In this document: positions 1-25,086 of the stretch, one piece after another
How positions within the stretch are numbered: position 1 is the stretch's first letter
How the letters are laid out: each line of letters begins with the position of its first letter
Assembly: GCA_964304625.1 (NCBI GenBank)
Contig: OZ199840.1
Span: forward strand, 9,756,057-9,803,114
Length of the DNA stretch: 47,058 nt
From: Kudoa neothunni
Lineage: Eukaryota > Animalia > Cnidaria
Direction: 5' to 3'
Notes under the pieces: model-generated
What the model was told of the DNA's origin: nothing
The model's input: only the letters and a program-made list of their open reading frames with translations
Databases searched by the model: none
Made by a program: the position numbers and the translations under genes

Positions 1-2372
1 TGTTTTATAGTCACGTATTATACTAACAAACAATTTTTTTGTTAGATCAGTTGGGTCTTCAATTATTGGTTCTAAATTTTATGTTTTAGTAATCGTTAAT
101 GATATATAATTTTTAATATATATTGTAAAATAATAACTCGGGGCTAGAATGATGGGAGTTTCTTCAGAACGATCAACAGCTGTAACCAAAATTTTATATT
201 CTTTCGAAGCGTCGTAACCTTCACTGAATATAATATTGTTACAATATGGTACTTCGGAGCATGATTTGGTATCGTTTGATGTAGTTTCTGACGACTGTTC
301 TACTGTACCAGCTCTTGCAATGGAAACTTTTTCGACATTAATTAATGATCCAGCCAATGGTGGTTGAATTGGTTCTGCAGGACATGAATATATTGTATCC
401 CACGATTCTCCATTTTTAACAGTGATTTTATAATGGCATTTTATGTCACTAATCGGTGTAGACAATTTTCCTATCATTTTATATCCTTTGTCCAATGTTT
501 CCTTCGTAAGAGTAAGAGTCGAATAAGCTATCGTATTTATAAAAATAATAGTTCATTCAATTATACTACTCGTTTTAATACTTGTGAATGTAATAGAACC
601 ATATTCTTCATATGCAACCACTTTAATATCGTAGGTAGTATTGAGTTCGAGGTCAATTAATTTCTTGGACTCCCTACATAAACCTCTACAAGGATTACTA
701 TCTACACATGTTGCTTCGAAAAATTTGTTCATTCCTGCTATACTGACAAAGTAATCACATGTGGGTTCCGTTTTGACTGTTCCAGGATCACCGATAATTG
801 CTTTAACTATGCTAGTTGAATCACCCGCAATAGGTTTTGCAGTATTAAAATTTGTGTCAGTTTTTTTATCTGAAATTATTAATTAATTCGAATATTATGA
901 TAACTTTAATACTTGTTTGGACAAAAATGTATTCCTTAAAATCTGCATAGTTTTTTATAGTATTAGTAGTTGTAGTAGTAATAGGTACAACTACTATCAT
1001 TAGAGGTCGTCCTTCAGGTAATCCTTGAATAATGAGAGTATCATTACAATTATTTACACAACCACCCGGATTTGAACATGTTGGAGCTATAAATTCATTA
1101 TTTTTGGTAGTATCTGCGACATAATATTTGATTGCACACCGATCAAATCTCGTAGTTACGCCACTTGGCTTAAATAATTCCACATTTAACTTTACTCCAG
1201 AATTGGTGACTGATACTAATGCATTATCATTTCCAGTTGGTTCGATGATGGCTAAAATATAATTAGACAGTTTATCTAATTATTTATACCAAATTTTTTG
1301 TATGTAAATCCTTCGAACGATCCACCCTGTTTTTCCGATAAACTATGGTGTCTTCTTCGTACCAATATTTCTACAATTGGCTTTGTTGGAGTAATAGTGA
1401 GTTCTACGTCGTTACAGGGGGCGTAGCATTGTTTTTCAGAACTGCCGCAATTTGATGAAAAACCGGTTTTAGACTTTGCTGCATCCAATGCATCTCTGAT
1501 ACTAAAGTGGCATATTTCATTAGGAATTGGATTCGTAAATTTTAGTTGATATTTGGTTTTATCCTGAGCAGATTTGTATTTAACATAGAATTGTGGCTTG
1601 TAAACGTCTATATTTTCTTTCATATAATAATTTGGCATGTGGTAATAGAAAATAGGATAATCGGAGCATCTCACTTCAAAATACGGGATTTTTATTCCAT
1701 ATTCAACAGTATTAATATTAATAGTGTCATTAGCTTTACCACAGTCTGCTGCTTTAGGCACATCTTTGTATTTTATTCCTTTGTAATAAATGGGACAAGC
1801 GACAGGTTTGCATGTGATGGCTTCCAACTTTAAATATTTCCGATTTGTGGATGGTTTTATGTTCGGATCAATTAATAATGCTAAATATTTATTAATTATT
1901 TAACTAAGCTTTAAACTTACGAATTCTAAATCCAAAAACTTTTCCTCCCTTTGGGAGACACGATCCTTCAACATCACCACCGGACGAACCATCTTTAATA
2001 TAAATGTATTTTGATCTAGGTGATAGTTGTGTATATGTAAGCTTATTGTCGGTGCCAGCGCAATTCCGTACACATTTATCCTGAACATCACTAACTTTAC
2101 TTGGACATGTTTCAATTTCGACAAAGTTATTTCCTTCAGCATTTTCTTTCATTATGCGGCACTTATTTTGGCCTATGTATTGTGTTCCTTTCAGTTCGAT
2201 ATGAATCTTATTGGTGTTAGTATCGGAATGATCTAGCTGATAAAAAACTTCTCTTTCAACAGTAGCGTCATCGGAGTAACAAGTAATTAAAACTAAATGA
2301 AATTCACCAGAATCAAACAGATATTTGTATACGTGAAAATATGATGACCAACGAAAAAGGTTCCATTTTCAT
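1..2372 (-). CDS. Paralog A of the multi-exon Cys-rich cell-surface protein family (3' end runs off the window)
   Basis: Manual splicing: ATG at 2372; GT-AG introns at 2293-2332, 1881-1920, 1252-1289, 870-912, 528-569, 72-137. Internal exons are 372/591/339/300/390 nt, all multiples of 3, phase 1-1. N-terminus MKMEPFSLVIIFSLLITCYS-DD is signal-peptide-like. Colinear with the four other copies. Confidence 0.88.
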
Positions 2373-3362
2373 TATAATCATCAATTAACCTAAAAATATA
2401 AATCTGTTATTCTAAATATATTCAGTTATTAAGCTTCTTATTTTAATACGAACTAAAAAATGAATGCATATAATTATAAATAAATTGTTTTATAAATATA
2501 GTCGGAGCTAAATCATCAAGATAGAGTTTTTAATAAAATATAATAAAAATAATTAGAGTTAATATGTCGTTGGGGTTTATTTTATTATTTTATATCTATT
2601 TCCGATAAAGATCAATGTATTCTTTGATTATTGTTAGGCATATTTATTTGTAGAGTACGAAAGTTACTTTTATTTCATTTTCACCGAACTTATCTTTTAT
2701 AAGGAAATATAAAAGCTTTATATTAAAAAATAAGACATCTTATTAAATTAGTAAAAAGATCAATTTCTTGATGAAATTCTAGTTTTATGAAAGCTTCTAA
2801 TCCTTTGTCATTTATAATAAAAACTGTCGTACATTTTTTATTATTGGAAGTATTTACATCTGCAAGAAATTTCTATTCGTCACATATCGTTCAATATGTA
2901 AATGATATTTTTATTATTTAAATAAATCTTTCAAATTATTTATTTATAACTCATCTTTATGTTAATTAAGGAAATAATGTCTAGTCTTTATGTAAATCGA
3001 TCTGCAAGCTGAATTTTGTAACTTACAGAGAATAGTATTATCACTCATTAATTTTGTTTTGTACTATTATTGATATTATTCGTTTATCTATCAATAGTTT
3101 TCACTTCTATTATTATTAATGCTTCATATTTAAAGATAATGAAGCAACCTTATCACATTTGTCTTAATTAATTATAACTGTTGTATAGACAAGAATAATT
3201 TCTGTTGTAACTTTTATAGTCATAATGTTATATAATAAGAATAATCCAATTAATATATCTTTCATTATCTAAAATAAAAATTATCTACAACCCCCCAAAC
3301 ACACAAAATATACTTCTTGAGTCTATTTAAATAATCGATTTAATTCAAACAAATGAGGAATT
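2373..3362 (-). promoter_or_regulatory. Duplicated 5' flank of paralog A (homologous to 9461-10332 and 23285-24300)
   Basis: Alignable non-coding blocks upstream of A, B and C, e.g. TTATCTTTTATAA(C/G)GAAATA.AAAAGC.TTATAT.AAAAAATAA. B/C homology extends ~1.7-2 kb (to ~11180 and ~25260). Regulatory role is inferred only from position. Confidence 0.5.
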
Positions 3363-3933
3363 TTGGTAATGGGGGAGTGTGCAGCTCCCATTTTTCACCC
3401 CCTTGCGCATGTCTGACAATCCCGATTTTATTTTAAATCAATTATTCACTATTTTAAACTTTTGGCCGAACAACAATTCGCTTCATAATTCACTTCTAAA
3501 AATTTTGCCAAAATTCACGTTCGGCTTCAATCGGTGCGTGTGCATGTGAATGCGCAAGGTAGTTTTGTTCTATTTTCAATATGAATTTATCATATTACTC
3601 ATGATTAAGCGTGTTTTGTCTTGCTTAAATTTAATATGAATAGTCGGAACGTCGCGGAATGTAAAAATAGCTGTTTATAGCTGCACGAAATAACTAAAAT
3701 GTATTAATTTCGTCTGCCAAATTGTTCTAGCTCTCTGCTTGTGCAAAATCGTTTATCATGAAATTTATTAGTTTATATATTATTTTTAATATTCCAAACC
3801 AATTTTAAAATAAGCTAATCCACAAATATATCACATGTATTATTAATATTCTTTCAAAAGCATAATAACTAAGAATTAATTCACATAAACTTTTAATATT
3901 ATATATGAAATCCATAAATTTGCAGTTTTATAC

Positions 3934-4098
3934 TGTTAGGGAAAGGAATCATCGTTCAAATATAACAATAATAATATAGAGGCTAATATAAGGGTATTTA
4001 TATAGTTAGCGCCAACTGTATATTAATACACAGGTACCGACCAAGATAACGTGTGTCATTGTAACTTTGACGCCGAAGACTAACTGTTAGCCCCAACA
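3934..4098. mobile_element. Solo LTR (165 bp) nested in the Merlin element
   Basis: Termini TGTTAGGG...CCCCAACA (TG..CA with short inverted repeat); perfect 5-bp TSD TATAC (3929-3933 and 4099-4103); second copy at 17916. Confidence 0.85.
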
Positions 4099-4559
4099 TA
4101 TACATTTTTATAAATTTTGGATAGAGTCGTTGTGAATTTATAAAATGATTTCATTGGAACTCTCTACAAGTTTTTATTCGATATAGTTTTTCACCAAGAT
4201 ATTTTTCGTAAATAAGTCGTATAAGTTAAAAAAGCATGTTTTTATTTTTATCATTTTAATTCTATATAAAAATAAAATTTTGTGATTTCATTTATAGTTT
4301 TTAGTTTCCTACATTAGAAACATAACTCACGATAAATTAAAAATTGTAATTCATGTATTATTACGTTCTTGTGAGGTTAAAAAGCTAACACTACAATAAT
4401 CAATGATTCTGTTTAAAAATAATTCAAGAATATAGAGGAGATTATAAAACTCTATTTAAATATTATATTTATTTTCTATTTAGCATTGCGCATAGAATAA
4501 GAAGCAAATTTAAAAGAACCAAAAAATGGAATTATTATTCAATTAATTCTAAGAGATAG

Positions 4560-5700
4560 GGTAGAGTGTATTTATCGAATTTAAAATAAAATCGAAAAAT
4601 TCCCATTTATTGCTAAACTTCGATCACATCCATTCTTCGTGAAGATATGAATCAAGGTACGCTCTGGGGACACCACTCACCCGTCGTAATAATTTGGTCT
4701 TAAGATGGTGCCACACAACTTCCACTGTATATTTGTGGTAACCTTCTCTTGTAACATATTCCTTGGAATGGTTAATATTTTATGGGTAAATCCATACATT
4801 CCAAGGGTTTGATATGCTTCGCATTCATCAGTAAATATCGTGGAACCAGGCTCAACTTCTTGATGTATTAATGATATCAATGCACTCTCATCCCTTCTTT
4901 GAACAACAAAAAATCTGGATTCTAATAGATTTCTTTTGCTTTCATTGTCGACGGAGCATTCGCATATCCCGACCACCCAAGGCCCTTCGATACAATTACC
5001 ATAACGCTCAACAGTGTAGGAATTTTCACAGCTTTCGATTTCGTCATTTTTCGATTCAGATAGAATATAGGTTTCATTAGGGGCGTTTCTCAACCAACCT
5101 TATGCCAAATATCGTCTACGATTATTTTTTCGCTTCCCCCTTAGGAGACATTTGTCAATATCGATAACTTTTTTAGGGCCACCAAATTTTGAACGCAAAT
5201 AAAACGATTCAGTTGAAATCATCCCAAATTTGAAAAACCAACATGTAACCGTTTTTCCAGATAATTGTGCCAAGCTAACTGTTCTGCTCGCTGTTCTTCG
5301 AAACTCCATACATATATTATCTCAAATATTTCCTGAATTGTTAAATTTTAACAATTATTCCCAAATGCGTTAGTCATTGAAAAGAACGTTGATGTCTGAG
5401 GAGAACAATGAGTTCTGCATTTTGTACTGTAGGAAAATAAAATATTTTTTACTAACAACATTACTTGGAACATACATATGAAAATCTTTCAGCTAACTTA
5501 TTGTATCGTTCACTCAAAGCATTAATACTTAATTTTCGTTTAATAACTTTCAGTTTAAAACTATTGCATCTTCCGCAATTCCTGCATCTTGTAGGAATTC
5601 AGATAAGATTTTTGTCAATTAACAAATTTGTTAGTTTCTCGATGCTGAGTAAAATGTTGTAACATCGGCGTTGGCTACTGATAAACACCATAACGAAGAT
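4560..5700 (-). pseudogene. Merlin/ISXO2-type DDE transposase pseudogene
   Basis: GGPKKVIDIDKCLLRGKRKNNRRR (cf. GGPG.IVEIDES.FGKRKYNRGR), WVVGICE, EVEPGSTIFTDECEAY, frameshifted HKYTVEVVWHHLK (cf. HTNTIEG.W), N-terminal CRNC. Stops and frameshifts present; ends approximate. Confidence 0.85.
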
Positions 5701-6274
5701 TTGGTAAATGTCGTGTTAACTACAATGAAAACTACTCTGAAAATGTAAAAATGTGTTATTTATGTTTGGTACAAATAAAAAATACATTAATTATTAGGGG
5801 TCCATAAAATAAATTATATATACATTCGAATGAATTTTAGGCAAAACCGAAAATTTAAGAGAGAAATCTATAAAAAGTTTCTTCTTAGCGTGTTCTCAAG
5901 AAATTGGCATAATCGATCTGATGCGGTTAACGCGGTAATGTTTTCCATTAAGGTCGACAGAAAGATTAAAATTTGTTGAAATAATAGTGGTAAAACATAT
6001 TGGAAATTTAAAGCAAGGCAAAAACATGCTTAATCATGAGTAATATGTTAAATTCATATTGAAAATAGAACCAAACTACCTTGCGAATTCACATGCACAC
6101 GCACCGATTGAAGCCGAACGTGAATTTTAGCAAAATTTTTAGAAGTGAATTATGAAGCGAATTGTTGTTCGGCCAAAAGTTTAAAATAGTGAATAATTGA
6201 TTTAAAATAAAATCGGGATTGCCAGACATGCGCAAGGGGGTGAAAAATGGGAGCTGCGCATTCCTCCATTATCC

Positions 6275-6396
6275 ATTATAATTTTTGTATCGTTTAATAA
6301 TATTTTTTTGATTATGTTTATGCAAAAAAAACTTGGGGTCCAAAAGACCCCAAGTTTGTTGGAGGGTAGTCATTTTTACATAACTTAGAGGGTTAA
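6275..6396. mobile_element. Orphan piggyBac-like terminus
   Basis: Subterminal inverted repeat AACTTGGGGTC-caaaa-GACCCCAAGTT, then ...AGAGGG followed by TTAA (6393-6396), as in piggyBac ends. Confidence 0.55.
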
Positions 6397-6578
6397 AGAC
6401 GGGTTATAACTTATAACCCAAACTTTCAACTGAAATTAAATAATTATACTTCAAATTAATTTTAATAGAAATATTGGATGAAATAAATAATTATAAAATA
6501 TTCATTTAAATTAGTTATGAATCATGATAAATAATATTATTCATTATCTACTACAAAAAAGAATATTTGTATCATTCT

Positions 6579-9460
6579 TTATTTCTTTCTGTAGGCCATA
6601 AAACCTCCTATTCCTCCGATAAGTATAATTGCAGCAACAACCGACACTATAATACTAAACGAAAAAATTAAAAAAACGACTACTCACATCACATACATTG
6701 TTATATTGCCTGACCTATAAAATAATAATTACATACAAAAATAATTATAAATAAATTTACGTTGATTTGCTAGCAGTTGCACCTAAAATTAGAGTTATAC
6801 AATATTTCTAAGTATTTAAGAATTGGATCACCTTTGTCAATTTCAGCTGTACCAAATATTGTTCCATCCATGCTGTAGAATACGGTCAGATGATAGTCGT
6901 TTAGATCCTCCACATTTTCAATCGTAAAATTCTTACAGCTTGGAAGGGTCGTACAATCATCTCCTCCGTTACTCATACATTTTTTGACGGTTGGTCTAGC
7001 CACGTCGTTTGAATTAATTAACATCCACATACATTTGGACTCTCCATCTATTCCAACTGGAAGTATGGTCGTTATCTGTAATGTTTTATCGTCACGTACT
7101 ATACTAACAAACATTTTTTTTGTTAGATCAGTTGGATCTTCAACTAATGGTTCTAAATTTTATGTTTTAATAATCGTTAATGATGTATAATTTTTAATAT
7201 ATATTGTAAAATAATAACTCGGGGCTAGAATGAAATGAGTTTCTTCAGAACGATCAACAGCTGTAACAAAAATTTTATATTCTTTCGAAGCGTCGTAACC
7301 TTCACTGAATATAATATTGTTACAATATGGTACTTCGGAGCATGATTTGGTATCGTTTGATGTAGTTTCTGACGACTGTTCTACTGTACCAGCTCTTGCA
7401 ATGGAAACTTTTTCGACATTAATTAATGATCCAGCCAATGGTGGTTGAATTGGTTCTGCAGGACATGAATATATTGTATCCCACGATTCTCCATTTTTAA
7501 CAGTGATTTTATAATGGCATTTTGCGTCATTAAACGGTGTGGACAATTTTCCTATCACTTTAAATCCTCTGTCCAATGCTTCCTTCGTAAAAGTAAGAGT
7601 CGAATATGCTATCATACTTTTAGTAATAATAGTACATTTAAGTATAATACTCGTTTTAATGTTTGTGAATGTGGTAGAACCATATTCTTTATAAGCAACT
7701 ACTTTAATATCGTAGGCAGTATTGAGTTCGAGGTCAATTAATTTCTTGGACTCCCTACATAAACCTCTACAAGGATTACTATCTACACATGTTGCTTCGA
7801 AAAATTTGTTCATTCCTGCTATACTGACAAAGTAATCACATGTGGGTTCCGTTTTGACTGTTCCAGGATCACCGACAATTGCTTTAACTATGCTAGTTGA
7901 ATCACCCGCAATAGGTTTTGCAGCATTAAAATTTGTGTCAGTTTTTTTATCTGAAATTATTAATTAATTAATTCGAATGTTATGATAACTTTAATACTTG
8001 TTTGGACAAAAATGTATTCCTTAAAATCTGCATAGTTTTTTATAGTAGTAGTATTAGATGTAACTACTATCATTATTGGTCGTCCTTCAGGTAATCCTTG
8101 AATAGTGCGAGCATCATTACAATTATATTTGCACTCATCCTTTTTTAAACATGGGTCTATAAATTCATTATTTTTGGTAGTATCTGCAACATAATATTTG
8201 ATTGCACACCGATCAAATCTCGTAGTTTCGCCAGATGGCGCCAATAATTTCACATTTAAAATGACTCCAGTATCTGTGACTGATACTAGAGCATTTTCGT
8301 TTTCAGCTGGTTCAATGATGGCTAAAATATAATTAGATAGTTTATCTAATTATTTATACCAAATTTTTTGTATGTAAATCCTTCGAACGACCCATTCTCT
8401 TTTGCCGATAAACTATGGTGTCTTCTTCGTACCAATATTTCTACAATTGGCTTTGTTGGAGTAATAGTGAGTTCTACGTCGTTACAGGGGGCGTAGCATT
8501 GTTTTTCAGAACTGCCGCAATTTGATGAATAACCAGGGGGGTTTGAGGAGCTTACTACATTCGATGCATCTTTGATACTAAAGAGGCATATTTCATTAGG
8601 AATTGGATTCGTAAATTTAAGTTGTAATTTAGTATTCGAATCGACAGATTTGTAGCTAACGTAGAATTGTGGCTTGTAAACGTCTATATTTTCTTTCATA
8701 TAATAGTTTGGCATATGGTAATAGAAAATAGGATAGTCGGAGCATCTCACTTCAAAATACGGGATTTTAATTCCATATTCAACAGTATTAATATTAATAG
8801 TGTCATTAGCTTTACCACAGTCTGCTGCTTTAGGCACATCTTTGTATTTTATTCCTTTGTAATAAATGGGACAAGCGACAGGTTTGCATGTGATGGCTTC
8901 CAATTTTAAATATTTCCGTTGTGTGGATGGTTTTATGTTTGGATCCACCAACAAAGCTAAATACTCCTTAATTTTGATAAATAATGTTTAACATACGAAT
9001 TGCAAGCCCAAAAACTTTTCCTCCCTTTGGGAGACTCGACACTTTAACATTTCCAGCAGATGAATCATCTTTTATATAAATGTATTTTGATCTTGGGGAT
9101 AGTTTACTGTATTCCAGCTTATTGTTGGCACCAGCACAAGTCCTCACGCACATATTTGTAATGCTAGCCTCATTGCCTTCGCATGTAATGATTTCGCTAA
9201 AATCATTTCCTGTAGCGTTTTCTTGCATCATGCGACATTTTTTCGTTGTCGAATATTGTGTTCCTTTCAGTTCAATATGAACTTTACTAGTGTTACTTTC
9301 GGAATTATCTATTTGATAGAAAACTTCTCTTTCAGCAGAAATGGAACTGGTATCATCGGAATAACTAGTATATATAACTAAATGAAATTTACTCAAATCG
9401 AACGATGAATTGTTTACGCGATAAAATTATGACCAATATTAAGGGGCCTATTTTCATCAT
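6579..9460 (-). CDS. Paralog B, complete 10-exon type I membrane protein (~823 aa)
   Basis: Introns 9378-9417, 8957-8996, 8322-8359, 7951-7997, 7609-7650, 7153-7218, 6783-6831, 6715-6760, 6655-6696 join into one open frame. Signal peptide MMKIGPLILVIILSLIYTSYS; C-terminal TM IIIVSVVAAIILIGGIGGFMAY, then RKK-stop (TAA 6579-6581). Confidence 0.9.
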
Positions 9461-12400
9461 AATTGCAAATTGGCCTGAAAATATTAATCTGTTATTCTGT
9501 ATATATTCAATTATTAAGCTTCTTACTTAAATATAAATTAAAAAATGAATGCATTCGGATATTATTAACTATTTGTCTATAGTATATATTGTCGGAAAAA
9601 ATAATAATCAATGTAAAGATTGTCAGTAAAGTAATATAATAGCAGTTCCTAACGAAAATTATGAAACTAATTGGATTAAATATGGCATTGGGATTTATTA
9701 TTAATGTTATATTTATTTAAGATAAAGGTTAAAATATTCTATTATTATTTCTTGAGAAGTTTATTTTTATAATGTATAATTATTATATATTCAATTAAAT
9801 ATTACTTATATTATTGTTTTTCCCAATTTATCTTTTATAACGAAATAGAAAAGCTTTATATTAAAAAATAAAGCATCTTATCAAATTAGTAAAAAACATC
9901 AATTTCTATTCGTCAAACATCGTTCAATATGTAAACGATATCTTTATTATTTAAATAAAACTTTCAAATTATTTATGTTTAACTCATCTTTATGTTAATT
10001 AAGGAAATAATGCCTAGTCTTTATGTAAGTCGATCTGCAAGCTGAATTTTGTAACGTATAGAGAATAGTATTATCACTCATTAGTTTTGTTTTATACTAT
10101 TGTTGATATTATTCGTTTACTTATAAATATTTTTCACATCTATCATTAATAAAGCTTCATATTTAAAGAAAATGAAGCAACCTTGTGGCATTTGTCTTAA
10201 TTAATTATAACTGTTGTATAGAGAAGAATAATTTCTATTGTAACATAAAAATTATCTACTACCCCCCCAAACACACAAAATATACTTCTTGGGTCTATTT
10301 AAATAATCGATTTAATTCAAACAAATGAGGAATTATAGCTTAAATGATATCTATGGATTTTTACAAGTTGATATAATATATTGATTTTCCGTAAGGAAAG
10401 CTCTGTTCTAATCTTATTCTGGAAAAATCAGGTCATTTACGACTATAACATCGGCTTTATCTAAAAAATACATATTAAATTTTTTTCTTTATTTAATTTA
10501 ATATTAATTTGTTTTTCTTGAAATTAATCTCAAATTAAAATAACAATAAAATTATATTTTTCGTTTTATGTTAAAAAAACACTTAATAATTTTGAAACAG
10601 AATTTCTGAAAATTTGAAATACAAAAATTACAAATTAAATATAATTAATTTATATTTAATGATTTTCAAATCGGCATCTATTAAAATATTTCCAAATTAT
10701 ACGTATGCAATACAAACATCTCAAACCCACAAGAACAATTCAAATGACTGTTTCCACATAAACCTCACATTAATACTTTTTCGGAATGTTATGTTAGTCA
10801 GCTTTAGATTATCTTAGACAGAAATAGAATTATTCGAATATTTGAAATATATTAATGTTGATTTAAAACAAATATTCTTTATAAATTCCCATTTTTCCCC
10901 AAAAAATATTTTTTAAAGTTTTTAAAAAATTCTTTGATATTAATGAACGTTGTAACGAGAAGATTCAAAACTGAAATAAATTCTTAAAATTATAATTTAA
11001 AGGGATTCAATTAATTTTTGGGCATATATCTAAGATGTTAAATACATAATTTACGTTTTTAATTATCTATTGTAAATATACAAGTTATAGATTGTCAATT
11101 TCGTTCCAAACGTGACAATAGTATAGAAGAGCAATATCATCCAGTCAATCAACAGTTTGAATCAATTGACGTATTATAATTTAGTTTGTTTTGTTAGTTG
11201 CGATTTCTCAGGTACCGGATAATCCGATCGTGATCTGGCTATATCTCAGGTAAAGAATATCTCTAAATTATTTCATCTATTTTATTCATATTTAAATTAA
11301 AAAATAATATTTAATTACCTCAGTTTTTGTAAATTTTAGAAAAATTGGTAGAATAAATTAACAATAATTGAACCATCATTAATTAAACGATAATATATTT
11401 TAATTATCGTATATTTTTTAATATTCCGATAAATAACCAATTTATAAATTATGAAAATCTAGATAATTAAAAAAATATCCTTTTTTTACTCATATCATTT
11501 CGTATTTTAACAAGAAATATAATATATGAAGACTCAAACTAGAGAAGGAGGTATCGTAAAATATAACAGTTATCATATGCAGAAACTGAATTTCATATAT
11601 GATTCCAGTTTTTAGAGTTTATTTATATAATAAATTCTTTTTATGCCTTAATGTTTGTCAAATAACTTTCTCATTGCTTTCCAATTGACTTTAATTTCTT
11701 CAATAGAATTGTGAGGTTTAATATATTCAACAAAAATAATATGTTAATTCTAACTTTACATATATGTTATTCTATGATATTTTTAGATTTATCACTAATA
11801 TTCAATTTTTTCCTATGAGATTCAAAATCATTTTATGTGTCAATGTTTGTCATTTTTATTGGTGAAATGAATATTAAATGAATAGAAGACTTGTAATTAT
11901 CATCATCATTATTTAATGCATTCATGGTTTTAAGAAATGAAGGAAAGCAAATAGAAATCAACGTATATGTGAGGTATTACAACGGAATACAACTATACTA
12001 CAGGCATCGCATAAGGGGATATAGAATCTGAAAGTGAATTCTCACTTGAATTCTTTTATAAGCCTTTTCGGTTGAATCATACCTATAGCAATGTGGTAGA
12101 TTAAATTTTTAACGTGCGATCTGATAAACGCTTACCAAAGAAATTTTGTCACGCGCAAAGTCCTGAAAAATGCAGACGAAAAAATTCAAAATACTTCCAT
12201 AAGCGTATTCAAAGATATAGCAACACAATACAAAGTCACGTTTAAAATTAACGCGTTCTTCTAATCAGGATTTGAGGTTACTTTAAGAATTGGGGTCAAA
12301 TTGACCATGGAATTGGATCGTAATAGCAATAAGACGATAGCAAACGGACATTTTACAAAATGTATTTCTTGGAAAATTTGCATATGCAAGCTTAGCATTG

Positions 12401-12989
12401 ATCAGCAACACGATTTCAGAACAGGTACGTATTTTTCTAACATCCAAGTATGTTAAACAGGAAAAATAGCTATACCTACCATTTTATATTTGTTTTAGAA
12501 ATCCACCCAACTTCTGATCCTATTACAATGCTAGATACTGACAGCATTCTTAAGAAGAAAATAGAGGTTGATATAACACCCCAAGTCACGATTAATGGTC
12601 TCCATAAAATTGGATCAGCAGCATGAAGTATTAGATATTTTTTTGTGATATTAACACAGCACACTTCGAACAGTAAACGAAGCATATAAATCGCATGACC
12701 TACTGTTACATCCAAAAATAAATGTCGGGGATGGAGTTTGTTATTAATTTCACACTCCAAAAAATGGCAAACAAAAGTGTTTCATGTAAAGTTTCTACTC
12801 TTATCGCTTAATGATAATAGAATAACTTTTGAACATACTGCAAAGAATTGGAATAATGTTCCACATAATATTGTAGATATATTCCCAAAAATAGAAACAG
12901 AGACATTGTTTCATATAAATAAATTTGAATGAAATTTATATAAATATTGAATTTAAATAGGCGAGTAAGATCCATAAAGATAAGAAAAT

Positions 12990-15900
12990 GATAGCATAAT
13001 CAATTACTGTAATACCTCCTTATAAACTGTATTTTTGGTCAGACCATTTGGAGAAAAAGAGTATAAATTATGTTTGCAACTTATCCTGGAGAGGACGACA
13101 TACAACTGCCCATGAGAAAAACACGGTTCCTCTTAATATAAACCAGCAACTTTGAAGATTTGTCACTGGGCCTTATTTATGGATATTACAAGATATGATT
13201 TGATGGGAAATTGCAGTCTTTTAAAATTAAAGGCGGTGTCTGAACGAATAATCGGAATATATACATCTTCCCCTCTGGCACAGCCTGTTACGATAACGGC
13301 CTAAATAAGATAAGACATTAACGACTTTACCACTAATCGGGTGCTGTTATACAACCTTGGTGAATCCAAATTTCTTAGCAATATAATTGGAGTGTCTACC
13401 TTTAGGAGAAGTTTGTGTGAAGGAACCCTCGATAGCTCTAAAGTCGAGACTCTAGACCGTTGAGGAATTCAACGGGAAATTAATACATTGATTTTTGTCC
13501 ACAATGGTGTCATATGATTTATACTCTGTAGAGTCGCCTGGAATAAGATGGATCAATCTATCATTGATTTTGTTTACGGATTGGTTTGTGGGGGTTAAGA
13601 TAGCTCGTTCTGACAGTCAATTAGAGTTGTAAAATTTTTGTTGTATTTCTGGAAAAACACGGTTTATCTAATCATCCATGGACGAAATCAAGTTTGTCAG
13701 GGAACATAGAGGTATACATCCGTCGAGCCCAATCGTAAGTTGATCATCACCTATCCGTGGTATTTCTGAAGCGAATTGACTGGTTCCTTCTTTCTTTTCT
13801 GAGTTGCGCTCTCATATTGGTGGTGGGATGGTGGGTTTTAACTCGCGACCATAAGAGAGAGAGCTTTAGGGAATATTTTACTTCGTCATATCTTGTATCT
13901 CTGGGTATTACATGTAAAGTTTGGCGAAAATCGCCTGACAAAACCATTGATTCCGCCATATGGAATGTTTTTGTCTGTTTTATCCCTTATCGTTCTATCT
14001 AAAGCTTTGAAAATCACTCTATTTGCCATTTTGCATTCATCCCATATGATGACCGTGCGTCTGGTCAACAATTAGGACAAACCTGTCCCCTTGCTGATTG
14101 CACATACGATGGTTCCATCATCCTTAATCGCGATTGGCAACTTAAATGTACTATGGGCGGTCCTACCCCCTGGTAATAATGTGGATGCAATGTCCTAAGA
14201 TGCAAAAGCGAGTACAATTTTATATCCCTTCTTAATTAGACAAATAAAAGAGTTGTCACAATTGTCTTATCTATACCACTAGGTGCATCAAGAAAAAAAC
14301 GTTACAATTACCTATATTGTTATAAATACGTATCAACACTGTTTCGAATGCAAATCTTTGGTCAGGCGTCAGTTTCGGCTTGTTTATTTCTATAAAATCA
14401 GATAATTCTTCAGTGTCGTAGGCTAACTCTCTCTGGACTTCGTTTGGAAGAGGGACGCCAAATGTTCCATCCAAAGGAAGAAATCTGTGTGAATTTAACA
14501 TTCCTCCGCTCATTTGAATTAAAGTTCTTTTTGTGTCAATTAGAGCATGTTAAAAATCTCAGAATTGAAAACCTAGTTTGACATTAAACTGTTTTGTTGC
14601 AGTTGATATCAGTAATCTTCCGACATATCTTCTTTAAAAAGTAACCAATGTTTGTGAGGCTGGCGCGTTTCGCAACTTTTGATCAACAGTGCGAATAATA
14701 TTCGTAATTGACGTGGACTGTTTATAAGAGCCGCTTCTCTTAATGTACATTCCCAGTGGTTGTCTCCCTCCATCTAACCATTTTTAATGCACGCTTAAAG
14801 TTATGTTGGGTATAGCTGACCGTTAACCTTCTTAAGATCGTCAAAACTTTTAGGTCCCTTTACACAATGGAGCAACATCCTCAAATAAAAACATTCTTGA
14901 TGTGCAGGGTGTACACTGTAAACTCTTCCTATTGTAGAGTCGAATCGTATGACTGGATGGTCTTCAACTAGACATCGTCTTTTTGTCCAACGCCAACTAT
15001 TATCATTCCATATGTAATAATATGGGGCTTGATGGTAGAGGAGACTTTGAGCGAATTCGTCACTCTGGCATAACTTGAAAAAAGCGGTTAATGGCGTATC
15101 CCTTTGTTTTAGTAACCGATTCAACAAAGTTTCGTCGATGAAATATATACGGTGACCGTTCTCCAAATGGACGCTTAAATGCTCTATGGTTGAAAGATGA
15201 CTATGAATATTGAAGCAGAATAACCTCCAAAATCCTTCGCTACTGCTTATGTAGCGACCAGCCTGGTAATTTGAAACTTTAACCAAACGATCTCTTTGAT
15301 TAACAACAAACATGGCGGCAACAGAACATTTGTTTACATATTTCCATATGTATTTAGTGGACTTGACTGAATGACAATACATTACATAATATGGGCATTG
15401 AAAATCTTCGTCAACAAAGGACAATAAGGAACAATCCAACTATTATCTATGATGACTTCCCTATCTTCAGCTTCAGGTCGTCTTCTTTTGTAAACAGAAT
15501 ATCTATCAGTGTCTGTCTGGGAGAGTTTTTGGTGCATTTTCTCTGATCAATCATGCACGGGCTTTCTGGATTCGACGCACCACAGGGACTATGTACCATA
15601 GTTGTTCTTACAATCTGGAAAAATACTGGATGTACACCTGGGTCTAGTAATTCGCTCAATATGAATTGGTCGATATCATTGGAACACAGTTTCTGTTTCA
15701 TCCAGACCAATATATGAGCGTGTGGCAACCCCATTTCTGCCACTCAATAGTATACATAACACTAAAATTCACCAAAAATCTTCAATACATAAATTCAATT
15801 CATCAAAATTTTAATTACAAGTTGAATACTCTGGCAACTATATCTGGTCTGTCTTTAGGTGCTTGGCTATGAAATAACTCTTCATTAATTTCGCTCCAAA

Positions 15901-17330
15901 ATGGATTTCATGTGAATGTTAGAAATAGATCTGACCCTCCAAAACATCGAACGTAGATCGTGGCATTCTGCATCTTCACGGTCATATAGCGTGATGAAAC
16001 TACAAAAGTCGATGGCAAAATATACAACCGTCCCCGCCTATTTATTTCACCGTCGCTACGATTGCAATTCATTAAATTGATGTAAGATTCAACATGAAAT
16101 TCAAATTGTTTGGTTCTGATGAACCAAAGTCTCTGATTCCATCGTCGCAAGCATGTCTACAGCATATTGTTGGAATAATGTCCAAAACTGATGAAGCATG
16201 TTAAAACTATTTTCCCTTACCATAAAATGAAAAGAATAAAAATCCTTACATGAAACACTTTTGTTTGTGCCAATCTATGGAATATGAAAATAGTAACCAT
16301 CTTGACCATAAACATTAATTAGTGGATATCGCAATACATCATACGATCTGTGTGTTTCGCTTATTCTTTGAAGTCTGTTGTCCTTACTGCTCGAAACAAT
16401 ATCCCTCCTAGATTGCTGCTCATCCGATATTACGATAGCCATCTCATTGTAAGTTGGGGTGTTGTATCTTCTCTCATGTTCTCCCTGTGGACGCTCATCA
16501 GCGTTTATAATTATATTAAAATTAGAGGATGGGTACATTTCTAAAACATACTTAAAACTGTGGATGTAGTTATTGTGACTGTGTAACATATCTTGAAGCG
16601 CTAAAATAATATCATAGCTAAGCTGGGGGTACATGTTGGATCGACTTTGAGCTTACAAATCCATGTCTTGTATGAAATATATTTGCAAGAATTTCGGTTG
16701 CTTATTTTCAGAAGGCGATATCGATCCAATTCGATGACAAACTTGACTGTGAACCTTAAAAATAAGCATGAATCCGTCCCTACTATTTACGTTCACTCCA
16801 AATGATGTTATCTGGAAAGCACAGTTGTATCTTTAGATATTTTGTAGGAAGTGTCTGTAGAATATGAGGAGGAACAGGTAGTGCGTCCAAAATAACCTTA
16901 CCGCCGGCACAACACATATCCGCGAATTCGTTTATTCACTTCTTAGAACGGCATTTTGGGAAAATTTTCGACATTTTCCAAATTGTGATATTCTTTTCAT
17001 TTCCATAGTTGTAGCAGAGGTCGTAATGTAAAGCGACCATATTCCAAGTATCATCAGACATACTTCGCGATTGTTGACCGAATAGAACAGGAGTGTAGGA
17101 AAATTCAGGTACAAATTTACTGCCTGATCATGTGCTGTGCTTATTTATAGGTGACACTGCAGGACTCTGTTGAGTCGCCTCACCTACACGTCGATTTCTA
17201 TTGCTTACTCTATTTGTTTCTCGTATTCGTTCTCTTTGCTCGTCGGTTTCTCGTGAAAAGCGTAAACGTCGGCAATTCCGTCGTAATTGTTGGCGTGTAT
17301 AGTCAAAAATAAGAATAGCTCTGTAAACAA
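12990..17330 (-). pseudogene. Helitron RepHel (HUH Rep + PIF1 helicase) pseudogene
   Basis: Ordered motifs on the minus strand: N-terminal ETDEQRERIR repeat, ISETHRSYDVLRYPL, LYILPSTF, DLFLTFT, GLPHAHIL (HUH), KYIWKYVNK, RYISSSEGFWRLF, ECFYLRMLL, GGRTAHSTFKLP, IIWDECKM, SGDFRQTL, FSHGQLYVVLSR. Many stops and frameshifts; element termini not firmly located. Confidence 0.92.
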
Positions 17331-17915
17331 TTAGGGATACGATCGAATGGTATTGTTTACTTTCCTACACCTTATTCACAAACAAATGTTTTGAGGGAGA
17401 AAAGAAGAAACTTCCAATGCATAATACTAGAGTACCAGACGCAAAACGTTTATATTAATCTGATTTGATGCAGATGGTTTTATACGAAATAATAGAGTCA
17501 ATGAAATTAATCGATCGATAAAAAAATTATTGGATTATGACATTCAAACGCTTTTCAAATTTTCAATTTACTTGATTTCATTTAATAATAATTTTAATGT
17601 GTTTGTTTATTGTGTAAATTTTTTTTCAATATAACATCTATACACAGATTTATATTCCATAACCCACGCCCAGGTTGCTCTAATCCTCTAGGTCACCTGA
17701 AGGTAGATTTAGATGAAAACATAAAACACTACAAAATACAACTAAAAATTGTTCTATTCTTTTTAAATTTTAACCATCTCTATTCGATCGCGAATCTTAC
17801 AATTTCTAATAGATTAGGCTTTAAACAGTCCTATAACTTTTTTGAAATTCACCATTTCTTAGAACACACAACTTTCGGGAAATTCCGAAGTTTGTATTGT
17901 ATATATCTAGCTATC

Positions 17916-18078
17916 TGTTAAGGCAAGGAACCATCGTTCAAATATAACAATAATAATATAGAGGCTAATATAAGGGTGTTTATATAATTAGCGCCAACTG
18001 TATATTAATATACAGGTACCGACCAAGATAATGTGTCATTATATCTTTGACGCTGAAGACTAATTGTCAGCCCCAACA
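17916..18078. mobile_element. Solo LTR (163 bp), same family and orientation as 3934-4098
   Basis: TGTTAAGG...CCCCAACA, high identity to the first copy; own 5-bp TSD CTATC (17911-17915 and 18079-18083). Confidence 0.85.
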
Positions 18079-18920
18079 CTATCTATCTATATAAATAAAG
18101 TAGTAACGTCCGTGTGTATACGTATTTTTCATTCTCTATAGAGGGACATATCGCTCCATTTGAGCAAAAATATGGAAAGATAAATTTTCTTTTAACACAG
18201 AAAAATACTTAAAAAATTATAAACGGTTTGCATCCTACAAAATGACTATAAACATTTTCACGTGGTATGATTGTTTGATTTGATGGTTTATGCAAACATA
18301 GAGATCATTTTCTTATAGATATAAAAGTTAATTATAAATGTATTGTAGTGTTTATTTTACTTTAAAATTTTGAAAAGTAATTTAGTAATTGAATCAGTTC
18401 AAATAAGGAAGGTAATATTAGGTTATGTAGCTAAACTTTAATATGAAATTTATTTGTTGATGTTTAACAACATTAAACCTTTTCAAATGGTATGATTTAG
18501 AGATTACTGTGAACAGCAAGGAGAAACCCCATTTTTTAGGAGCTCTAAAGAGGAAATTTTAAACGCTCAGCAGTGTTTATTCATTTAAAAAATAATAAAT
18601 AAGGTTCATGCGTCCAATTAGTTAAATAAATCATTCGTTAATTGGTAATCTTTTTATTATTTATCTAAATACTCTTAATTTACTTTGAACTTCAAATGAC
18701 CTTGGACAATTCGTGGCGTTAGCCTAATTGGCTGGGAAAAGAAGCTCACGCGAAAGGGGGCTTTTGCGATAGTTTAACATATATATAATTATTTTGTTAT
18801 AAAAATATAATCTATTAATTTGGTAAAAGTTTCAAATATTTGATAACATTACATCACAATTAATATTGAAACAATACTAACAAGTATTAAGAAGATAATT
18901 AAATTGAACTAAAAGCGATG

Positions 18921-20262
18921 TTAACCCACCTTGTCTGAAGCGGGTTCCATTGAGGACCCCAATTTCATTACTTTTCACGTTACTCTGAAATGAACTGCTG
19001 ATTTCTTAACTGTTCCAGTAGAGCCGCTTTATCATTAAAAAGTTTGCATACAAATTATAATTTAATTTCTAATTTAAAAATACGCCTTAGAGATTATATT
19101 TATTTCATAATCCGATTATTTATTGCTACAGAATCTCAAGAAAAATGGTCCATTGTATACATATTAACTTATTTCACTTATTTATATTTATAAATTTATT
19201 TAATTGATTTTAAAGCCATATAGACGTAAGGTTTCTATATACTTCGACTTAATAGGAGATTAGAGAGGATTAATCTGTACCGCACTTCTTGGTTGGTAAG
19301 CTCTTGTTTATCTAAAGAATCTCTCTTTGCCAACAATAAACTAGTCCATGATTCATTATATGCAACATAACTATTAGAACCTTTGTGTATTAACTGAGGG
19401 TTCCGTAATATTTTTTCGGTGAAATATAAATTTATAAAGTATAAAGTAAAGTATTTGGAAAATAATTGTTCTACTGCAAATTTATTAAAATAATCAGAAA
19501 TAATGGCTATTATTATTTGTATTGAGTATATAATTGAAGTTAAAGCATTGTGTGTTTATTAATTATTGATGTCGACATGTATGTGCTACGAATCATTCGT
19601 ATACAAGCGTTAAACGTATGTTCCAGCAGTTCGCAAATATGGATACCAAAATATTTCCACAACTTAGGTTCCTTCAAAATAAATTCTAAAATGTAATCTT
19701 ACTGACTCTTAAATATGCAAATAAATTTTAAAAAAGTTCGTAAAAATGTAAATAAATTACTAAGCAATACACCTTTTGTAATTTTTTTATTATACTTTTG
19801 ATGGAATTAAAACGACATGAAATTTTCAAACGCTGCTTTTTATGAAAACTCAGAGTAAAGTGCATGCGCGGCTACATTTACTACTTTATAAACAGTCCGA
19901 TAATTTTTACAGAACGGCGCTTAGTTGGGCCTATGTTTGATCATCATCTATTAATTTTTATGGAACCTAATCGGATAAATTAGATATTTATTTCATTTAG
20001 ACATCTTCGAAGCATTTAGTGCTTAAATTTATGCGCTGATTTCACTACATTTGCCCGACTCAATAAATTCATCTTAGCTCATATCTGCATTTCAAACTAC
20101 CGGATAGAGCTAGATTTTGTTTTTTATACTTATAAATGCCCTTGAATAACATCATGTTAGTTTCGTAATAATTGATGGCGCTTAAGACCGACTTAAAAGA
20201 GGGCCCCAATGGACCCATAGGCACACGCGTAAATTTTTCGCACGCAATGCAGGTAGGGTTAC
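18921..20262. mobile_element. Decayed or deleted piggyBac-like element (~1.33 kb)
   Basis: Left TTAA-CCCACCT (18921-18931); right AGGTAGGG-TTAC (20251-20262). Imperfect GGG..GGACCC subterminal motifs at both ends. Weak internal similarity to the transposase GS.R.VT.DN.FTS..LA segment (GSNSYVAYNESWTSLLLAK, ~19320-19390, minus). Confidence 0.5.
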
Positions 20263-20425
20263 TTAATATGTTTAAACTGAAATTAAATAATTATACTTCA
20301 AATTAGTTTTTATAGAAATATTGGATAAGATAAATAATTATAAAATATTCATTTAAATGGGTTATGAATCATGATAAATAATATTATTCATTATCTACTA
20401 CAAAAAAGAATATTTGTATCATTCT

Positions 20426-23284
20426 TTATTTCTTTCTGTAGGCCATAAAACCTCCTATTCCTCCGATAAGTATAATTGCAACAACAACCGACACTATAAT
20501 ACTAAACGAAAAAATTAAAAAATAACTACTCACATCACATACATTGTTATATTGCCTGACCTATAAAATAATAATTAGATACAAAAATAATTATAAATAA
20601 ATGTACGTTGATTTGCTAGCAGTTGCACCTAAAATTAGAGTTATACAATATTTCTAAGTATTTAAGAATTGGATCACCTTTGTCAATTTCAGCTGTACCA
20701 AATATTGTCCCATCCATGCTGTAGTATACGGTCAAATGATAGTCGTTTAGATCCTCAACATTTTCAATCGTAAAATTCTTACAGGTTGGAAGCGTCGTAC
20801 AATCACCTCCTCCGTTACTCATACATTTTTTAACAGTTGGTCTAGCCACGTCGCTTGAATTAATTAACACCCACATACATTTGGACTCTTCATCTATTCC
20901 AACTGGAAGTAAGGTCGTTACCTGTAATGTTTTATAGTCACGTATTATACTAACAAACAATTTTTTTGTTAGATCAGTTGGGTCTTCAATTATTGGTTCT
21001 AAATTTTATGTTTTAGTAATCGTTAATGATATATAATTTTTAATATATATTGTAAAATAATAACTCGGGGCTAGAATGAAATGAGTTTCTTCAGAACGAT
21101 CAACAGCTGTAACAAAAATTTTATATTCTTTCGAAGCGTCGTAACCTTCACTGAATATAATATTGTTACAATATGGTACTTCGGAGCATGATTTGGTATC
21201 GTTTGATGTAGTTTCTGACGACTGTTCTACTGTACCAGCTCTTGCAATGGAAACTTTTTCGACATTAATTAATGATCCAGCCAATGGTGGTTGAATTGGT
21301 TCTGCAGGACATGAATATATTGTATCCCACGATTCTCCATTTTTAACAGTGATTTTATAATGGCATTTTATGTCACTAATCGGTGTAGACAATTTTCCTA
21401 TCATTTTATATCCTTTGTCCAATGTTTCCTTCGTAAGAGTAAGAGTCGAATAAGCTATCGTATTTATAAAAATAATAGTTCATTCAATTATACTACTCGT
21501 TTTAATACTTGTGAATGTAATAGAACCATATTCTTCATAAGCAACCACTTTAATATCGTAGGCAGTATTGAGTTCGAGGTCAATTAATGTCTTGGACTCC
21601 CTACATAAACCTCTACAAGGATTACTATCTACACATGTTGCTTCGAAAAATTTGTTTATTCCTGCTATACTGACAAAGTAATCACATGTGGGTTCAGTTG
21701 CTTCGGTTCCGGGATCACCGACAATTGCTTTAACTATGCTAGTTGAACCACCCGCAGTAGGTTTTGCAGTATCAAAATTTTTGTCAGTTTTTTTGTCTTA
21801 AATTGTTAATGAATTCGAATATTATGATAATATTGTTACTTGTTTTGACGAAAATATATTCCTTAAAATTTGCATAGTTTGTTATAGTAGTATTAGATGC
21901 AACTACTATCATTATAGGTCGTCCTTCAGGTAATCCTTCAATAGTGCGAGCAGCATTACAATTATTTACACACCCATTCTTTTTTGTACATGTTGGATTC
22001 ATAAATTCATTATTTTTGATAGTATCTGCGACATAATATTTGATTGCACACCGAACAAATCTCGTAGTTTCGCCAGATGGCGCCAATAATGACGCATTTA
22101 AAATGACTCCAGTATCTGTGACTGATACTAGAGCATTTTCATTTCCAGCTGGTTCAATGATGGCTAAAATATAATTAGGTAGTTTATCTAATTATCTATA
22201 CCAAATTTTTTGTATGTAAATCCTTCGAACGATCCACCCTGTTTTTCCGATAAACTATGGTGTCTTCTTTGTACCAATATTTCTACAATTGGCTTTGTTG
22301 AATCAAGAGTGAGTTCTACGTCGTCACAGGGGGCGTAGCATGGTTTTTGGGAACTACCGCAAATTGATGAGTAAACAGGTTTAGGATTTGCTACATCCGA
22401 TGCATCTCTGATACTAAAGTGGCATATTTCATTAGGAATTGGATTCGTAAATTTTAGTTGATATTTGGTTTTATCCTGAGCAGATTTGTATTTAACATAG
22501 AACTGTGGCTTGTAAACGTCTATATTTTCTTTCATATAATAATTTGGCATGTGGTAATAGAAAATAGGATAATCGGAGCATCTCACTTCAAAATACGGGA
22601 TTTTTATTCCATATTCAACAGTATTAATATTATTATTGGCATTAGCTTTACCACAGTCTGCTGCTTTAGGCACATCTTTGTATTTTATTCCTTTATAATA
22701 AATAGGACAAGCCACCGGTTTGCATGTGATGGCTTCCAGTTTTAAATATTTCCGATTTGTGGATGGTTTTATGTTTGGATCAATTAATAATGCTAAATAT
22801 TTATTAATTATTTAATTAAGCTTTTAACTTACGAATTCTAAACCCAAAAACTTTTCCTCCTTTTTGAAGACCCTCTCCTTTAACATTATCGCCGGACGAA
22901 TCATCTTTTATATAAATGTATTTTGATCTGGGTGATAGTTGTGTATATGTAAGCTTATTTTCGGTGCCAACGCACTTTCGTACACATTTACCCTTAACAT
23001 CACTAGCATTATTTACGCATGTTACGATTTCGCTATAATTGTTTCCTTCAGCATTTTCTTGCATTATGCGGCAATGATTCGTTTTTAAGTATTGTGTTCC
23101 TTTCAGTTCGATATGGACTTTATGGGCGTTGATATCGGAATTATCTAACTGATAATAAACTCCTCTTTCAACAGTAGCGTCATCGGAGTAACAAGTAGTT
23201 AAAACTAAATGAAATTCACCAGAATCAAACAGATATTTGTATACGTGAAAATATGATGACCAACGAAAAAGGTTCCATTTTCAT
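20426..23284 (-). CDS. Paralog C, complete 10-exon type I membrane protein (~817 aa)
   Basis: Introns 23205-23244, 22793-22832, 22164-22201, 21797-21839, 21455-21496, 20999-21064, 20629-20677, 20561-20606, 20502-20542. Exon lengths sum to 2454 nt (3n). Signal peptide and TM-RKK end as in A/B. Confidence 0.9.
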
Positions 23285-25086
23285 TATAATCACCAATTAA
23301 CTTAAAAATATTAATCTGTTATTCTAAATATATTCAGTTATTAAGCTTATTATTTTAATACGAACTAAAAATGAATGCATTTTTTTATAAATTGTTTTCT
23401 ATTATAAATATTGTCGGAGCTAAATCATCATCAAAATAGAGTTTATTAATAAAACATAATAAAAACAGTTTTAACGATAATTATAAAAATAATTGGAGTT
23501 AATATGTCGTTGGGGTTTATTTTATTATGTTATATCTATTTCCGAGAAAGATCAATGTATTTTCTGATTATTGTTAGGCATATTCATTTTTATAATGTAT
23601 AAAGTTACTTTTATTGTATTTTCACCGAAGTTATCTTTTATAACGAAATAGAAAAGCCTTATATCAAAAAATAAGACATCTTATCAAATTAGTAAAAAAG
23701 ATCAATTTCATGAGGAAATTCGAAATTTTTGCTAGTTTCTAACCTTACGTCTATTCTCAAAAAGAAATGCTGTAAATTTTTTATTATACTAAGTTTTTTA
23801 CATCTGTATGAGATCTTTATTCGTCAGTTATCGAACAACATATAATAGATATCATTTCTATTCAAATAGATCTTTTAGAGTATTTATTTTAAATCACTAT
23901 TATGATTATTCAAGAAATCATGTTTAGCCTTCCTATAAGGCGATTTGCGAGCTGAATCTAATATAGTAATGAGAACAGTATTATACGAAGTTAAATTTGT
24001 GTTGTTATTTGTTTACCTATGAATAGTTTTGATTTTGAATATGAGCAATGTTTCATACAGAAAAAGAATGACATCGCTTTATGAAATTTGTCTTAATTAG
24101 TTTTAGTTGAAGCACCGAAAATAATAAATTTAATCGTGACTTTTTATAGTCATACTATATCTAATAAGAATAATCAAATTAATTTATATTTCATTATCTA
24201 AAATACATATTACCCACTTTCTCATTCCTACTTTTAGGATATAATAAAATAATGGATGTAATTCCATAAATTATTCAAACAGCTTTCGAAAAAATGTAGA
24301 ATTTTCTTAATAAACATATTAATGGGTATTTATATGTTAATATAATATAACATTTTCAATAATATAGTGGCTAATTCACGCTTTTTCTCTGGTCACAAAG
24401 GGATTATGAATTAGCCGTCACCCACTGCAACAGACCCATTTTAGTCTTAATCTGCAACCATTAGGTCAATTCTTAATATAACATTGGCTTTACCTTCAAA
24501 AAAATACATTTAAACACTTTTATCTTTATAGTTAATTAAACATTAATTTGCTTTTCTCGAAATTGAATAACAACCAAATATACTTTTTATTGTTATTTTA
24601 AAAATGAAAAACAATTTTAATACTTTGAAATAGGCGAACCTCAAACTAAATATTATATTTAATTTATTCTTTAGTAATCAATAAATCCACGCCTATTAAA
24701 ATATTTCTACTTTATATTTTTAGTTATATGAATGCAATACAAACAGTTGGAAAACCACAAGCACAACTCAAATTTCTGTCTATCCATAAAACTCGCATAA
24801 ATATTTATCCATATTGTTATATCAGTCAGCTTTATACTATTTTTGGTAGAAACAGGTTTATTCGAAAATTAGAAGTATATTTGTTTTAGTTTACAAAAAA
24901 TTTAACTTTTATTAATCCCATTTTCTCCAAAAATGGTTTAAATTTTTACAAATCGTTTTTGATAGAACTGATACTTATTTTTATTAAACAAAATGTAAAA
25001 TCTAATATACTTAGTTCATAAAAGATTAAAAATCAAAATAAATTATTAAAATTTTAATTTTGAAATTGTCAATTAAGATTTTTAGC

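Follow-up and report, generated by a model that had tools for sequence, protein, structure and literature searches.

A 47,058-nucleotide stretch of the genome of the cnidarian Kudoa neothunni (contig 3, positions 9756057-9803114, of the 40.26-Mb genome; hereafter the window) carries five copies of a ~3.3-kb unit, and the genes in these units, apart from the diverged copy D, are patchworks of segments shared with one another and with further copies nearby. The copies have recombined with one another on the scale of short tracts, and this recombination extends to synonymous and non-coding sites and to a second array on another contig. Recurrent short-tract interlocus gene conversion among tandem paralogues is very probably the best explanation of the mosaic. 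The window is AT-rich (G+C ~30%), and all five paralogue units lie on the minus strand, so that they are read from right to left: unit A at 1-3362, unit B at 6300-10400, unit C at 20271-24212, unit D at 26557-29446 and unit E at 38047-41068. For the comparison, 90 kb of flanking sequence was added to the window, and the tandem array thus considered comprises at least 11 paralogues, including Z, located 3-7 kb before the window (window-relative -7036 to -3017), B', C', D' and E', which follow it, and F, farther on.

The gene model was taken from B (6579-9460, on the minus strand like all of the genes, exons and tracts described below unless stated otherwise), which is complete. A signal-peptide-like first exon (9389-9460) is followed by exon open frames at 8968-9396, 8346-8954, 7960-8253, 7160-7813 and 6770-7114, and by a last exon (6579-6647) encoding a hydrophobic transmembrane helix, then a short basic tail and the stop codon. 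Each gene of the family has ~8 short exons separated by introns of tens of bases, which are too short to score alone. Gene A (1-2372) is partial: its start codon, mapped by alignment, lies at ~2372, and its 3' end is missing, as the remainder of exon 7 and the exon for the transmembrane helix fall into the 200-N gap before window position 1. Gene C spans 20426-23284, gene D 26538-29428 and gene E 38213-41096. D, whose identity to the other copies is 60-85%, serves as an internal control. These gene models predict that the family encodes type I membrane proteins whose cysteine-rich ectodomain consists of several modules.

A preliminary description of the window, made from the letters alone, had proposed that the nearest partner of A switches repeatedly between B and C along the gene. 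We matched its peptides by eye to the minus-strand open reading frame (ORF) translations, and scored the switches by sliding identity and by a copying model with donors restricted to B, C, D and E. All of the partner switches that it had listed were recovered by these two approaches. Along A from 5' to 3', the 5' exons are C-like (2872-1964), and are followed by tracts matching B at 1842-1721 (99.2%), C at 1720-1469 (98%), B at 1468-1358 (97%) and C at 1357-1230 (96%). Four such switches between B-like and C-like sequence fall inside the large exon 3 of A (1276-1827), an open frame of 183 amino acids with eight cysteines. Where exon 4 begins (~A 1273-1175), the closest pair is B and C (93-96% identity), and A is only 82-85% identical to either. 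A then matches B at 1053-643, where C is E-like, and matches C at 612-1 (99.3%); within this last tract, B is identical to C over the 82 bp corresponding to A 234-153, and at the start of exon 7, B is E-like. The interval 1290-22792, to which the mosaicism had been assigned, merely brackets the region from the large exon of A to the large exon of C.

The exchange among A, B and C was thus borne out, but the three genes do not form a closed set, since A is often closest to Z and C', two copies located beyond the window. When all of the copies were admitted as donors, the middle tract that had been ascribed to B proved to be closer to Z over A 613-1012 (99.5% identity to Z, with 2 mismatches in 400). 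Similarly, A 1721-2588 is a C'-like tract, with 97% identity to C' and 100% over several 100-column windows, and is nearer to C' than to C. In this all-donor model, A is composed of tracts from Z, B, B', C and C', several of which are free of mismatches over 82-378 bp. The non-coding 5' flank of A (2373-3400) is also mosaic. Its distal part (3366-2873) is 91-97% identical to Z, B and B' but ~70% identical to C, while the sequence downstream of ~2870 is like Z, C and C'. Moreover, a 100-bp stretch of this flank (2769-2867) is common to Z, B', C and C' and missing from B.

The other genes are built in the same manner. Gene C is a mosaic of C'-, A-, B-, Z- and E'-like tracts, in which 21920-21696 is E'-like, 21369-21080 is identical to B and 21079-20936 is identical to A. 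Gene E combines tracts of E' and F, including a run of 748 columns identical to F, and its identity to A, B and C is 50-75% in the 5' half versus 90-98% in the 3' half. The tracts measure ~20-870 bp at 97-100% identity, and their breakpoints lie mostly within exons, indicating that the pattern is not the result of exon shuffling at introns.

Statistically, the mosaic lies far outside what chance would give. The 607 variable sites of A, B and C formed 196 runs of like pattern, compared with 359 ± 11 expected from 10,000 shuffles. A four-gamete test of the pairwise homoplasy index (PHI) type yielded z values of -9.5 for A, B, C and E, -6.7 for A-E and -16 for nine copies, and the Hudson-Kaplan Rmin was 36 for the set of four and 104 for the set of nine. 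The longest shared runs of A-C and A-B were significant in a GENECONV-type test (global permutation p <= 0.002). As a null, we simulated 40 alignments without recombination on the maximum-likelihood tree under the fitted HKY+G model; the PHI z of these single-tree simulations was 0.02 ± 0.85 and never fell below -1.8, whereas the real alignment gave -15.6. The trees of eight 330-column windows of the alignment disagreed with high bootstrap support. By the approximately unbiased (AU) test, the whole-alignment tree was rejected in five of the eight windows, in three of them at p <= 2e-4, and the window trees rejected one another with log-likelihood differences of 30-230. One tree for all windows, the pattern that the preliminary description had named as contradicting its claim, therefore fails by the AU tests, and the PHI-type, GENECONV-type and window-tree analyses that it had suggested all uphold recombination between the copies. 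In addition, a mosaic path reduced the mismatches relative to the best single donor two- to threefold (from 146 to 49 in A and from 134 to 50 in B); the same reduction was 1.05- to 1.25-fold in the simulations (maximum 1.48) and 1.00 for D.

An explanation without any exchange would have to invoke shifts of rate specific to a region and a lineage, or convergent protein-level selection. The variable loops and the dN/dS ratios above 1 of exon 4 (A 866-1183 and its homologues) in the close pairs A-C (2.8) and C-C' (2.1) are what such an explanation can draw on. However, the synonymous sites share the tract pattern of their neighbouring sites, as does the non-coding flank, and the synonymous divergence (dS) of one and the same gene pair differs 5- to 17-fold among exons. 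For example, dS between A and B is 0.70, 0.115, 0.095 and 0.042 across exons, and between A and E it is 2.4 versus 0.14. Furthermore, the four-gamete incompatibilities are clustered by distance, and the rate-heterogeneous single-tree simulations came nowhere near the observed statistic. Since the tracts are present at synonymous sites and in the 5' flank, protein-level selection does not explain them, just as the preliminary description had argued, and we regard an origin without exchange as extremely improbable. Apart from this question, the exon 4 ratios, to which the pair A-B adds a value of 1.3, derive from small counts and hint at diversifying selection on the module encoded by this exon.

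The sequence beyond the window offers a natural comparison of closely related copies. A block of ~44.8 kb, covering window positions 2759-47058, recurs at window-relative positions 47259-91892, across a 200-N gap. The two block copies are 94-100% identical overall, ~99% in the intergenic sequence and 100% at both ends, with collinear gene order and spacers. They are most diverged (87-95% identity) within the gene bodies of B, C and E and along two stretches of spacer. Only 27 scattered differences in 3151 bp separate D from D' (99.14% identity), without any patches, and D copies D' as one segment. The identities of the other pairs are 95.9% for B/B', 94.1% for C/C' and 92.7% for E/E', each with 10-12 clustered patches, and in many of the patches one member equals another paralogue at all of the differing sites. 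D is too diverged from the other copies to pair with them and accordingly shows only the background divergence of ~1%, as befits an internal control. The expected body of A' falls in the second 200-N gap.

Either the 44.8-kb block has truly been duplicated in tandem, or its partner is a haplotig that was retained in the assembly; as the homology reaches exactly both contig ends, a haplotig fits at least as well. In either case, the patches date from exchanges younger than the ~1% divergence. The zero-mismatch tracts reach 290-750 bp in genes that are otherwise 85-90% alike, and we infer that the exchange is recent or ongoing.

The same features were found in a second array, on the plus strand of contig 2 (9793001-9873000), which contains at least 10 units that are 83-99% identical and a 400-N gap with a partial copy. 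Across ten units of this array, the PHI z was -44, the nearest neighbour changed every 200 columns and the 3' end was nearly uniform. The recurrence of the signal in this array indicates that the process belongs to the family, and not to one contig end.

How might such mosaics be formed? Repeated, short-tract, homology-dependent and non-reciprocal exchange, by interlocus gene conversion or by template switching in double-strand-break repair, would copy ~20-870 bp from paralogue to paralogue, with the flanking DNA staying put. In the conserved 3' half, the copying would homogenise the copies, and in the diverged 5' half, where the variable ectodomain is encoded, new combinations of variable segments would arise; D would be excluded from the exchange by its divergence. 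The earlier suggestion that exchange generates new variants is to be extended in that the process shuffles the 5' half and also homogenises the 3' half. The proteins would presumably be exposed at the surface and benefit from the diversification.

The junctions could instead be old misaligned crossovers, followed by divergence, in a history of unequal crossing-over or of duplication and chimeric gene formation. The array has indeed been restructured, as seen in the 44.8-kb block duplicate, the E/F duplicate and the 99% identical neighbours in the second array, and the long tracts shared by A and C' (868 bp) and by E and F (1.7 kb) could be crossover products. Every crossover, however, would alter the copy number and swap the flanks, whereas the observed tracts of ~20-870 bp have been transferred with no exchange of flanks or change of gene order, the spacers being collinear in both copies of the block. 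The boundary of the block also has no paralogue where a non-allelic crossover would require one. With at least a dozen alternating tracts from at least five partners within one 2.4-kb gene body, and with order and spacers intact, repair copying fits better than unequal crossing-over, which we judge to be quite improbable as the source of the mosaic. The non-reciprocal copying proposed here thus remains, in our judgement, the favoured molecular mechanism.

We also considered whether the mosaic could be an artefact, produced by low-coverage read correction or a consensus that mixed paralogues or haplotypes, or by a misjoin at a gap-flanked repeat. The published assembly (40.2 Mb, scaffold N50 of 12.0 Mb, 30.41% G+C, three chromosomes and a circular mitochondrial genome) was obtained with hifiasm-meta from HiFi reads of infected tuna, followed by YaHS scaffolding, purge_dups and hand curation (PMC12239612). 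Several observations weigh against gene conversion and mostly for an artefact. The mosaic is known here from the consensus assembly of one isolate alone, the k-mer coverage of the parasite is ~7 and the authors of the assembly report residual haplotypic duplication (PMC12239612). The window is a 47-kb contig between 200-N gaps (-199 to 0 and 47059 to 47258), gene A lies at its very end, and at both of its ends the identity to the adjacent block is 100%. The adjacent contig begins with a stretch (window-relative 47259-54500, which includes B') that is rich in insertion errors, with 53 one-sided insertions of 1-2 nt and none in the reverse direction, and low-depth correction of the reads could have turned near-identical tracts into perfect ones and overstated their recency. 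On the analytical side, for several of the divergent patches none of the 11 copies is a perfect donor, and the number of segments in the copying model did not differ between the real data and the simulations; this count is uninformative, and the mismatch-reduction ratio given above was used in its place.

Against an artefact, the 3.3-kb units are embedded in non-homologous spacers of 6-14 kb, so two reads of at least 10 kb that come from different copies should not overlap over their full length. No short-read polishing was used in the assembly (PMC12239612), and in an overlap-based HiFi assembly made in this way, consensus chimeras of 100-400 bp between differently flanked paralogues are unlikely. 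No exon frame of A, B, C or E is interrupted, the patches differ by 10-18% from the duplicate yet match another paralogue exactly, which is beyond sequencing error, and D/D' has no patches at all. Finally, the equivalent signal in the second array, on another chromosome, is stronger still. Taken together, we consider an assembly artefact improbable and hold to gene conversion between the copies.

We next turn to the extent and nature of the family. A search with the exon-3 module turned up 543 candidates at first look, spread over all three large contigs; at least 150 of them were scored as matches, all with E < 1e-44. The family may account for several percent of the 40-Mb genome. This module has eight conserved cysteines in a strongly conserved frame, with three variable stretches, and the exon-6 module has four conserved cysteines and, in the second array, an insert rich in Ser, Thr and Pro. 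AlphaFold models of the two modules were all-beta and weak, with predicted local distance difference test (pLDDT) scores of 54 and 58, and a fold search with them returned generic beta-sandwiches (C2, macroglobulin, FN3 and cytokine receptor) at Z scores of 5-7, which is the background level. At this level of similarity, an FN3-like fold is merely plausible for the modules.

Protein searches were run exon by exon. The eight family exon frames tested had no Pfam match (for A, three frames at E <= 1; for B/E, three further frames at E <= 0.01), and a sequence search of the PDB found no relative. The ESM Atlas gave weak CUB-like leads only, with scores of at most 0.81, and no homology to named variant-antigen families, such as the Giardia-type VSPs, was detected by Pfam or PDB or at higher ESM Atlas scores. 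A homologous-protein search found one metagenome fragment with 61% identity, and an exhaustive profile search of 1.84 billion representative proteins returned just 17 short unnamed fragments from metagenome or run assemblies. These searches and the models suggest an orphan family of predicted type I membrane proteins, with putative cysteine-rich beta modules and hypervariable loops. As a separate observation, a Logan contig from SRR33849685 encodes a distant relative in which one uninterrupted frame of 333 amino acids spans the equivalents of B exons 2 and 3, indicating that the ~30-nt intron 2 is absent or spliced out in this relative.

Two copies outside the window deserve comment. In Z, exon 3 carries a private 1-nt insertion and exon 2 has an odd length, so that Z may be a pseudogene; nevertheless, several tracts of A and B find their best partner in it. 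The frameshifts of B' suggested a second pseudogene, a candidate that we rejected: 28 of the 53 insertions are private to B', and their one-sidedness points to a low-quality contig end, so that these frameshifts are probably errors.

Candidate mobile elements are also present in the window. A transposon-like element (3367-6271) lies between A and B and also in the duplicate block; it is bounded by 251-bp terminal inverted repeats that are 96% complementary, and its ORF at 4677-5093 (minus strand) encodes an ISXO2-like DDE transposase domain (PF12762, E 2.7e-9). Three consecutive ORFs at 14801-16634 (minus strand) resembled a Helitron Rep by eye, but had no Pfam match at E <= 0.01; an inverted repeat with 69% identity (12445-12914 and 16119-16595) flanks these Helitron-looking ORFs. 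The identity of the two block copies drops locally to 93-94% at 13.9-15.4 kb and to 89-95% at 17.8-19.8 kb. The ORF at 34785-35117 (minus strand) weakly matches helix-turn-helix domains of Tc3/mariner-type transposases (PF13565 and PF01498, both under the curated cut-offs). Elsewhere in the genome, contig 4 (18,219 bp) is presumably the mitochondrial genome, and ARAGORN found no tRNA within its first 10 kb.

Mosaic genes made by conversion are a standard means of surface-protein diversification in many protozoan, fungal and bacterial parasites, and concerted evolution with interlocus gene conversion is familiar from tandem arrays such as the MHC, KIR and plant resistance-gene clusters. With the latter, the Kudoa family shares the patchwork identity, the heterogeneity of dS along the genes and the dependence on similarity, as illustrated by the exclusion of the diverged D. 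The finding falls in the generic class of interlocus gene conversion, with no difference in principle: the process is known, and the family and the lineage are new.

The gradient from a diverged 5' to a uniform 3' end resembles variant-antigen families with a conserved end as the source of homology. In Babesia, segmental conversion of ves1 (VESA1) genes into an expressed locus has reportedly been demonstrated during infection. That family, like the one described here, is large, clustered, lineage-specific, variable and surface-related, with short tracts copied between paralogues; the two are not homologous, however, and belong to an apicomplexan protist and a cnidarian animal, respectively, with the mosaicism in Kudoa seen at the level of the germline or the assembly. 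The VSG mosaics of Trypanosoma brucei, Anaplasma msp2 and Borrelia vlsE arise by programmed, somatic copying from silent or pseudogene donors into one active site. They have in common with the Kudoa family short, homology-driven copying from an archive of paralogues and a conserved 3' region beside a variable N-terminal region, whereas the Kudoa family is known from genomic sequence only. The msg genes of Pneumocystis (PMC5676039) likewise form a multicopy surface-protein family with mosaics from recombination between paralogues and conserved segments that provide homology. They are subtelomeric with a single expression site; unlike them, the Kudoa arrays are internal to the chromosomes where examined, at 9.76 of 11.05 Mb on contig 3 and 9.8 of 12.04 Mb on contig 2. 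Although ves1, msg and the VSG mosaics are the nearest known parallels, the Kudoa family has no homology to any of the three.

Among myxozoans, the closest parallel is Sphaerospora molnari, for which 18 VSP-like genes, defined by CXXC motifs, have been described alongside other variant-surface families (bioRxiv 10.64898/2026.02.11.705288). Like the predicted Kudoa proteins, these are cysteine-rich type I membrane proteins of a myxozoan, with a short basic tail, and a role in antigenic variation has been proposed for them (bioRxiv 10.64898/2026.02.11.705288). The Kudoa family differs in having at least 150 copies (543 candidates), beta modules with four to eight cysteines and no Pfam match. The same study states that antigenic variation has been observed in myxozoans and that its mechanism is not known, and its text contains no mention of gene conversion (bioRxiv 10.64898/2026.02.11.705288). 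In the literature that we searched, there was no description of the family, of gene conversion in Kudoa or of conversion-made mosaics in Myxozoa, and the word "surface" is absent from the K. neothunni genome report (PMC12239612), in which genes were predicted without parasite RNA (5,316 proteins) and very few transcriptome reads mapped to the parasite.

For annotation, the present results are a warning that gaps, retained haplotigs and overlooked gene models are likely in this family and its arrays. A more far-reaching reading is that more than 500 type I membrane proteins of Kudoa constitute an undescribed system of antigenic or receptor diversity, in which the ectodomain exons are continually reshuffled by segmental gene conversion, perhaps also somatically during an infection, with the homogenised 3' half as a homology anchor. 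We think this unlikely, although if true it would explain, in molecular terms, the antigenic variation that has been reported in myxozoans and that still lacks a mechanism. If the mosaicism holds in reads, the family would be a candidate for host-interaction diversity in Kudoa and a metazoan test case for conversion-driven diversification.

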